A stretch of 63,622 bases of DNA, the filler included, from Hyphochytrium catenoides (taxonomy: Eukaryota; Protista; Hyphochytriomycota), in the NCBI GenBank assembly GCA_900088475.1. It is 7 parts of 7 records of this genome, joined end to end, with 100 filler letters (N's around TTAATTAATTAA, not from the genome) between each part and the next. Parts side by side here need not be neighbours in the genome. Positions count along the whole stretch, not along the records: positions 62,376 to 63,622 come from FLMG01003387.1; 6 more parts are not named here. The stretch is one strand, 5' to 3'. This document shows, piece by piece, positions 62,376 through 63,622 of this stretch (position 1 is the first letter of the stretch; each line of letters opens with the position of its first letter). Under the pieces are notes generated by a model. The model worked only from the letters and a program-made list of their open reading frames with translations, searched no databases and had not been told where the DNA came from. Position numbers and translations under genes: made by a program.

Positions 62376-62911
62376 AGAGTGATCCCAGCAGTGGGTGACC
62401 TGCAAGAGCTTATGTCCGCCAAAGTAGACAAGAGAGAAGCCATTGATAGAGATCTGTTTGTTCTTTATCAGCGGCAGCATCTCTCTCAACAGCGTGTTTC
62501 CCATCGATGCGTTGCTCAGGACGGGCTGGATCAGGCTCTCTGGATAGGCAAAGGTCCCTTGTAAGGTCCACGTGACTCTGCAGTGCTGAGCGTCTGGGAC
62601 CTGTGGCTCTACTTCGAACTTGGTGATGGTGAGGTCAGGGATGACCTCTCCGTTCTTGCTCCAGAACTCTCTCACGCTCTCCATCCCGCGTATCTCTCTC
62701 CCGGAGAAGCCTTGGATGAGGACAAACTCTTCATTCCAGATGTCATCTCCATTCTCTAAGAGTTCTTCCACGCCTCCACAGTTGATCGAGTTGACAAAGT
62801 TCTCCAGCGTGTTTAGCCGTTTACGACGGATCTCCTGAAAGTGAAGCATAAATATAGACATATAGACAGATATAGTACAGAGACAGAGAGAGAGAGAGGG
62901 ATAGAAAAAAA

Positions 62912-62943
<32 letters not shown>

Positions 62944-63622
62944 TGAGGAGGATGATGGCACGGCAATTAGATCTCTTTTGCCGGAGGATTGTGTCTCTAG
63001 AGAAGAAGTGCGGCCAACTTGCGACGATGAAGTCGGAGAAGAAAGACGCTGGGAAGGAAAGTGGAATAGGGAAGTCTGGGAGATAGGGGAAGAGAGAGAG
63101 AGAGAAGCGTAGAGGAAAAGTAGAGCTCTCTCTCTTGTTTGGAGTTTCTCCTCCTTAGGCCCAGCAAAGAATTCTTGCTACCTCTATGCCGGGATTCTGC
63201 ATGGCTCCTCTTCCTCCCTTTCCTGCCGCTCCCGGTCGAGCGCCTCCTCCTCCACTGACCAGCAGCTGCTGCATCTCTTTTGCGACATCGATGCCTTTCT
63301 CTGCCAGTATCTGGCGCAACGTCGCGATCTCTGCATGCAGATCATCGACCTCGTTCTCTAGCTCTTCTAATCTTAACTGTTTTCTCTTCCTGCAGCGGCG
63401 TACAGCTTCCCGATTCCTGAGCTTCTTCTGCTCTGCCTCCCATGCTTTTCTCTCTTGTTCTTTCGCTGTCTGCGCAACGGCGACCGTGTCCTCTTTCCCT
63501 AGCTCTGCCGCTAATTGTGAGGCACAATCGAGTCCTCCGCCAGCAGCTGCGTCTTCTCTTTGAGAGAGAGACGACGAAGCCGGAGCAGGAGGTCGCACAG
63601 CCGCGATTCTCCAAGGCTCTGC
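62376..63622 (-). CDS. bZIP transcription factor with a C-terminal SnoaL/NTF2-like domain, partial at both ends
   Basis: Basic region RNREAVRRCRKRK (N-x7-R) and Leu heptads LEELENEVDDLHAEIATL. Downstream exon from 62834: GREIRGMESVREFW..IPDL..VTWTLQGTF..KQISINGFSLVYF.GHKLLQVTHCWD. Confidence 0.85.

Follow-up and report, generated by a model that had tools for sequence, protein, structure and literature searches.

What is a SnoaL-like domain doing at the tail of a bZIP transcription factor, and are the two really parts of one protein? The question arises in a stretch of 63,622 nucleotides (the window) joined from seven parts of the genome assembly of Hyphochytrium catenoides (GCA_900088475.1). 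Its last piece, positions 62376-63622 (from FLMG01003387.1), holds one partial gene on the minus strand, with both ends cut by the piece edge. A sequence-only reading of this piece had seen a bZIP joined by phase-0 GT-AG junctions to a SnoaL/NTF2-like exon, and had proposed a ligand-sensing, possibly redox-gated factor built like an aureochrome. The follow-up analysis indicates that the bZIP and the SnoaL-like domain very probably form a single fused protein. Because three homologues carry both domains in one intron-free open reading frame (ORF), this fusion is independent of the splice prediction at the Hyphochytrium locus, and the aureochrome-like order of modules within one protein stands as proposed.

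A bZIP and a SnoaL-like domain in one gene

The two exons, called A and B here, were each searched separately. The gene is laid out as follows, with all features on the minus strand.

63182-63622, minus strand: exon A, partial and cut at its 5' end; 147 codons, from the N-terminal region through the bZIP to a Gly-rich linker (from translation and Pfam).
63299-63448, minus strand: bZIP domain, exon A residues 59-108 (Pfam bZIP_1 and bZIP_2).
63389-63415, minus strand: basic-region core N70-REAVRRC-R78, with Cys77 at 63394-63392 (read directly; Cys77 aligned with the Cys of JunD).
63305-63361, minus strand: short leucine zipper (heptad register from the translation).
63182-63259, minus strand: Gly-rich linker V122-E147, coding with a donor at 63181 and intronic with a donor at 63259.
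62835-63181, minus strand: predicted intron of 347 nucleotides, phase 0, GT(AGCA)...(TTTC)AG (from GT-AG reading; pyrimidine-rich, with (CT)n arrays).
62376-62834, minus strand: exon B, partial and cut at its 3' end; 153 codons, NTF2-like/SnoaL-like (from Pfam, homologues and an AlphaFold2 model).
62466-62540, minus strand: helical insertion of about 24 residues, exon B residues 99-123 (alignment gap in oomycete relatives; helices in the model).

Exon A is recognised by two Pfam bZIP models, bZIP_1 (PF00170) at 41.8 bits against a cut-off of 27.6 and bZIP_2 (PF07716) at 39.4 bits against 22.3. It keeps the canonical spacing N70-x7-R78-x9-L88-x6-L95-x6-L102, which sets the zipper d positions at L88, L95 and L102 and the a positions at V92, I99 and L106. 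The best sequence matches among solved structures, found with phmmer, are JunD, GCN4 and AP-1 chains, and in these alignments Cys77 pairs with the Cys in Jun's basic region, a position that is Cys in JunD and AP-1 and Ser in GCN4. The canonical bZIP with a Cys in its AVRRCR stretch, as first read, is thus confirmed. Judged by its sequence, the protein is a bZIP family member and would be expected to bind DNA as a dimer through a basic region of the Jun/GCN4/C-EBP type. The zipper has only three heptad leucines: K109 occupies the following d position, and G110 comes right after it. L88, L95, L102 and G110 are invariant across the Hyphochytrium protein and its homologues (alignment A2), and a zipper of three heptads would be marginal for stable dimerisation.

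The protein is also a member of the NTF2-like superfamily, in its SnoaL branch, and the predicted NTF2-like fold of exon B is solid. Against Pfam SnoaL (PF07366), exon B, a fragment cut at the piece edge, scores 22.7 bits (E 9.3e-5), under the cut-off of 28.4, and it scores 18.9 bits against SnoaL_2; its orthologue P0002 reaches 34.9 bits with the SnoaL model, above the same cut-off. An AlphaFold2 model of exon B, built on an alignment of nine relatives, has a predicted local distance difference test (pLDDT) of 86.9 and a predicted template-modelling score of 0.80, and shows the alpha+beta cone of NTF2-like proteins, with three helices against a curved antiparallel sheet. Foldseek matches this model of the 62834-62376 translation to SnoaL-like cyclases, PhzA/B, ketosteroid isomerase and SnoaL2 (E 7e-9, probability 1.0, template-modelling (TM) score 0.66-0.70), so the NTF2-like assignment of the sequence-only reading is borne out by the modelled fold. 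Compared with solved NTF2-like/SnoaL structures, the model gives Z values of 14-15.7 and a root-mean-square deviation of about 2 A over 111-129 residues, and it fits the 'ester cyclase' clusters of the ESM Atlas at TM 0.70-0.74. Its language-model look-alikes all belong to SnoaL/NTF2 clusters (score 0.93). Sequence searches of the PDB with exon B alone found nothing significant, nor did a profile of the domain, whose best match was 8ysb, a 'predicted ester cyclase', at E 0.21. Many of the structural neighbours have ligand-bound pockets, including PhzA/B, ketosteroid isomerase, SnoaL2 and designed steroid binders.

Within this fold, an insertion of about 24 residues marks the bZIP-linked subfamily, and the oomycete relatives have a gap there (alignment A1). 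The insertion, residues 99-123, is modelled as two helices, 99-105 and 111-123, with pLDDT 62-88. Near the C-terminus, the THCWD of the Hyphochytrium protein corresponds to HSYD or HSHD in two homologues, to N in P0003 and to L..N in the oomycete relatives. Residues W58, W89, F138, D67 and N18 of the domain are invariant in the family. A homodimer prediction for two copies of the complete domain (P0002 residues 144-328) scored 0.01, which gives no verdict and speaks neither for nor against binding, and a full-length fold of P0002 from a three-sequence alignment reached a pLDDT of 47.9, too low to be used.

The case for a single protein comes from the homologues. When exon B was run exhaustively with HMMER against 1.84 billion representative proteins, three close relatives, P0001-P0003, came back at E 2e-44 to 6e-34 and 44-49% identity. 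On genomic metagenome contigs, P0002 (328 residues) and P0003 (430 residues) each read as an unbroken ORF that covers a bZIP, with a short zipper as in Hyphochytrium, and the same C-terminal domain. The third, P0001 (265 residues), would look like a SnoaL-only protein, a reading that was rejected: its gene call begins at an internal Met, and the true ORF (L011:352-1251) starts 34 codons upstream, encodes 299 residues and, read from the ATG at 352, contains the bZIP basic region (bZIP_1, 37.8 bits). The two domains therefore occur together in all four known subfamily members, and the basic region RNREAVRRCRKRKQ is identical in the Hyphochytrium protein, P0002, P0003 and the L011 ORF. These fused homologues take away most of the doubt that the two Hyphochytrium exons belong together.

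The P0002 and P0003 loci adjoin eukaryotic genes (PX, ELMO_CED12 and FAM91). The PX genes upstream of each, called as divergent neighbours (L002:1903-2574 and L005:751-1485), are 41% identical, and the retention of a PX gene at both sites indicates that the loci are orthologous and come from two related organisms. Conserved microsynteny is seen there in genomes that are compact, with called genes that appear intron-free and a GC content of 0.40-0.44.

At the Hyphochytrium locus the domains are separated by a 347-nucleotide intron, with a splice at 63181/62835 that is predicted from the sequence. Three GT donors follow the zipper in phase 0, at 63286, 63259 and 63181, and the acceptor TTTCAG|GAG at 62836-62835 is also in phase 0 and preceded by long (CT)n tracts; the phase-0 GT-AG junctions of the earlier reading are thus found again on inspection. 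Among the donors, 63181 is favoured because of three observations: a shared junction motif, the composition of the segment upstream of it and the linker lengths of the homologues. In all three homologues W(N/T)A(K/Q/R)-I-E-D-(L/I)-R precedes the SnoaL-like domain, and reading across 63181/62834 gives QNPG-I-E joined to E-I-R, which matches in length and residues; the last residues of exon A, NPGIE, align with NAKIE, NARIE and TAQIE. The segment 63259-63182 is purine-rich (0.73), resembling exon A and unlike the intron, which is 70% pyrimidine on the coding strand across 63181-62835. Finally, the linker between zipper and domain spans 42-70 residues in the homologues; with donor 63181 the Gly-rich linker would be about 36 residues long, whereas donor 63259 would leave only about 10.

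The donors at 63259 and 63286 are accordingly less likely, since they would remove the linker and the conserved I-E, although alternative use is possible. The same applies to an acceptor at 62832, the second AG of CAGGAG, which would cost one residue of the conserved IEEIR. Positions 62832-62837 on the minus strand form a NAGNAG-type tandem acceptor with both AGs in phase 0, giving one Glu more or less at the start of the SnoaL-like domain. The intron itself contains (CT)n/(AG)n arrays at 62879-62947 (35 copies, 80% match) and 63091-63105 (7.5 perfect copies), typical microsatellites that could be polymorphic, as well as an imperfect repeat of 8-10 nucleotides at 62852-62881.

Both ends of the gene are missing. 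Exon A has no in-frame start codon upstream, so the 5' end lies beyond the piece edge at 63622, and the alignment indicates that about 27 C-terminal residues conserved in the homologues are lost from exon B. The minus-strand frame open from 63622 runs for 155 codons and holds EQKKLRNREAVRRCRKRKQLRLEELENEVDDLHAEIATLRQILAEKG; with the intron retained, it ends at a stop at 63157-63155. The exon A frame appears to be coding up to the piece edge because it shares with P0003 the motif V-R-(P/H)-P-A-P-..-L-S-..-E, found at 63560-63600 on the minus strand and at residues 47-65 of P0003. The motif stands far upstream of the bZIP in both proteins, and P0003 has it as two repeats. Plus-strand ORFs of the piece have no Pfam match, and a long minus-strand ORF upstream of exon B was discarded as merely a translation of the CT repeats.

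Rarity and distant relatives

The bZIP-SnoaL architecture appears to be undescribed and is very rare in current databases. Full-text literature searches found no description of a bZIP-SnoaL or bZIP-NTF2 fusion, and P0002, used as the query of a word-indexed search against 5.8 billion proteins, brought back P0001-P0003 and no others. The same search run with each exon gave no match, as expected, since the full-length relatives fall outside its length window. A survey of P. sojae found that, besides one bZIP-PAS, 0 of 71 bZIPs had an extra predicted domain (PMC4046829).

Beyond the three close relatives, the HMMER search gave six significant matches at 23-28% identity. They include, at E 4e-5 to 6e-4, a Phytophthora nicotianae 'SnoaL-like domain-containing protein' (PPTG_16759 cluster) and hypothetical proteins of Bremia lactucae (CCR75_000352), and they pass the Pfam SnoaL model with 36-48 bits. 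No Pfam bZIP was found in these oomycete relatives. The sequence-only reading had suggested that a C-terminal domain of oomycete bZIPs might be related; this holds in part, in that oomycetes do have relatives of the domain, but on proteins that lack a Pfam bZIP.

In five of the distant relatives (P0007, P0009, P0010, P0012 and P0014), an acidic N-terminus that bears the motifs W-x-(E/D)-W and LD.FL..DF.EPF leads into an RKRK-type basic patch, and the SnoaL domain comes after the patch. This N-terminus looks like an activation region with a nuclear localisation signal, and the acidic motifs together with the basic patch suggest regulatory rather than metabolic proteins. The group may thus represent a family of nuclear SnoaL-domain regulators that have no recognisable DNA-binding domain. 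Six further hits (P0004, P0005, P0006, P0008, P0011 and P0015) were rejected as spurious, being long repetitive proteins with many short matched stretches and no SnoaL domain.

A metagenome scan with alignment A1 yielded only high-GC bacterial ORFs (L007-L010), unrelated to the fusion, whose SnoaL-like domain has a long region C-terminal to it. Two of them, L007:57-1490 and L009:2776-4053 (GC about 0.70-0.73, 425-477 residues), carry an HGHxDH motif in the long region after the N-terminal SnoaL-like domain, which on sequence looks like a metallo-beta-lactamase-fold hydrolase.

What the C-terminal domain may do

On balance, the C-terminal domain is probably regulatory rather than catalytic. The best explanation of the whole, although it falls somewhat short of an even chance, is a bZIP with an NTF2-like regulatory input that acts on the stability of the zipper dimer. 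The bZIP dimer would bind DNA, and the tethered NTF2-like domain would supply the input: its cone-shaped pocket could take up a small, probably hydrophobic, metabolite, the domain could self-associate, or both could occur. Ligand uptake or self-association would then shift the stability of the weak zipper dimer and change DNA binding. The family-wide short zipper ahead of a conserved Gly counts for this explanation, as do the ligand-bound pockets among the structural neighbours. The NTF2-like fold typically oligomerises and encloses a hydrophobic pocket, and in aureochromes the LOV domain controls bZIP dimerisation and DNA binding, much as ECF41 sigma factors are controlled by their fused SnoaL_2 domain.

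The individual parts of this explanation differ in strength. That the signal is a small-molecule ligand is plausible by analogy, yet less likely than not. Equally tentative is the fullest version, a eukaryotic one-component chemical sensor in which pocket occupancy would drive domain association, stabilise the sub-threshold three-heptad zipper and switch DNA binding on, having arisen independently of ECF41. Several points weigh against regulation through zipper stability. The splice at the Hyphochytrium locus is a predicted one, and exon B itself scores under the Pfam SnoaL cut-off. The length and variability of the linker, and its probable flexibility, disfavour a rigid allosteric coupling of the aureochrome type, and a common fold alone is no proof of function.

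The same short zipper can also be read differently. With only three heptad leucines before a conserved Gly, the dimer might need a second contact, and the NTF2-like domain could be a ligand-independent module for oligomerisation or partner docking that reinforces or specifies the short-zipper dimer or recruits a co-regulator. Dimers or larger oligomers are the usual state of NTF2-like proteins (NTF2, SnoaL, the CaMKII hub and G3BP), and the helical insertion of 24 residues specific to the subfamily could serve as an interface. Such a role is possible yet unlikely, since the long flexible linker makes a simple extension of the zipper less obvious and sequence similarity points to the enzyme and ligand-pocket branch of SnoaL proteins.

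A Fos/Jun-like redox switch at Cys77, with the SnoaL-like domain secondary, is improbable as the main input. Cys77 is kept in all four family members, on the Cys of Jun, and oxidation of the basic-region Cys of Jun/Fos blocks AP-1 DNA binding in vitro. However, a Cys at this position is common among bZIPs, and its presence in JunD and AP-1, with Ser in GCN4, gives it little predictive value; because of the JunD/AP-1 match, Cys77 is not special. The three Cys of exon B are not kept in the homologues. The possible redox gating raised by the sequence-only reading is weak.

More improbable still is an active enzyme of the ester cyclase, isomerase or epoxide hydrolase type, which would make the protein bifunctional or use turnover as the signal. 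The best profile and shape matches are indeed 'ester cyclase' SnoaL families, PhzA/B, ketosteroid isomerase and limonene epoxide hydrolase. The C-terminal H..D, however, is not kept across the family, suggesting no conserved acid/base pair if it is equivalent to the SnoaL catalytic residues, and we know of no enzyme of the NTF2-like/SnoaL fold fused to a eukaryotic DNA-binding domain.

It is just as improbable that the two exons are not one mRNA, with the bZIP frame ending at 63157-63155 and the SnoaL-like ORF lying in another transcript or in a decayed copy: the splice is a predicted one and donor 63181 (GTAGCA) is a weak match to GTRAGT, but in each of the three close homologues a single ORF encodes both domains. 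Neither exon is broken or out of frame, the residues flanking the junction align with the homologues, and outside the CT-repeat translation no start codon is available to exon B.

Comparison with known systems

Only a few bZIPs have a built-in sensor domain, namely aureochromes, oomycete bZIP-PAS proteins and Yap1-type redox sensors. A conserved bZIP-SnoaL fusion would bring a chemically gated type to this list, and would be the eukaryotic equivalent of the sigma factors that in bacteria are fused to a SnoaL_2 domain; as a one-component chemical sensor it would also be a chemical counterpart of the aureochrome light switch. Were ligand control shown, the protein could offer a compact ligand-switchable transcription factor of about 300 residues, built on a fold that protein designers already turn into steroid and vitamin binders, examples of which are among its structural neighbours. 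Apart from mechanism, the domain architecture is new and well supported, in protists that have been poorly sampled. The shuffling of domains onto bZIPs is in itself not surprising; the new part is a SnoaL-type C-terminal domain on a bZIP whose layout, with a sensor-type tail, is already known.

The basic region follows the contact pattern N-xx-A-(A/V)-xx-(C/S)-R of Jun/Fos (AP-1), GCN4 and C/EBP, with Val as in C/EBP and Cys at the redox-sensitive position of Jun. It differs from these proteins in what follows, a zipper of three heptads only and then a globular domain.

The C-terminal domain shares its fold with SnoaL-family 'ester cyclases', PDB 3kkg, PhzA/B, ketosteroid isomerase and SnoaL2 (Z 14-15.7, TM 0.66-0.74), and exon B has the Pfam SnoaL motifs ..PDL.., W..GT and G.S..F. 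These pocket proteins are only 8-18% identical to it, and the Hyphochytrium protein differs from them in the 24-residue insertion and the fusion to a DNA-binding domain. The nearest named relatives of the domain are the oomycete SnoaL-like proteins, in which it likewise stands C-terminal, after a basic patch; they differ in having no Pfam bZIP, no 24-residue insertion and an acidic N-terminus with W-x-E/D-W and LD.FL.

Another oomycete group resembles the bZIP-SnoaL protein in size and layout. A cluster of oomycete bZIPs with PF27643 BZP1_C (1514 members, 291 residues) is a weak Atlas look-alike of P0002 (score 0.83). No BZP1_C match was found in P0002 or P0003 in precomputed Pfam lists or local scans, libraries in which the presence of this model is unconfirmed, and BZP1_C may be related remotely, at the level of fold.

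Oomycete bZIP-PAS proteins, PsBZPc32 and PlBZP32, also place a putative ligand-binding domain after the bZIP (PMC7273347), and by published survey no other bZIP with an extra domain is reported among the 71 in P. sojae (PMC4046829) or the 50 in P. litchii (PMC7273347). Their domain is PAS and not SnoaL, from another family, and the P. sojae and P. litchii surveys report no SnoaL-type bZIP.

In bacteria, the ECF41 and ECF56 sigma factors (e.g. SigJ of M. tuberculosis) carry a SnoaL_2 domain C-terminal to a transcription factor as an in-cis regulator, and in ECF41-type factors this fused SnoaL-like extension both inhibits activity and is required for it (PMC8999054). They differ in their bacterial sigma-2/sigma-4 domains and in a SnoaL_2 domain that contacts the RNA polymerase-binding linker. 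Pfam finds no sigma domains in exon A, which matches only bZIP families, and the two fusions are independent, making ECF41 and ECF56 analogues and not relatives.

Aureochromes, the blue-light bZIP-LOV proteins of stramenopiles, have the same module order, an N-terminal bZIP effector followed by a C-terminal sensor-type domain. The logic is likely the same by analogy, with the state of the sensor controlling bZIP dimerisation and DNA binding. The bZIP-SnoaL lineage is probably also stramenopile, since the Atlas look-alikes of P0002 are mostly from Oomycota and Bacillariophyta and the domain has relatives in Phytophthora and Bremia. The differences lie in the domain, PAS/LOV there and NTF2-like/SnoaL here, and in the linker, which is a defined helix in aureochromes and long and Gly-rich in Hyphochytrium. 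The two exons have no flavin-binding motif, and a Pfam scan that admitted E values up to 10 matched neither PAS nor LOV. The Hyphochytrium protein is thus neither an aureochrome nor an ECF sigma factor, and resembles both in design only.

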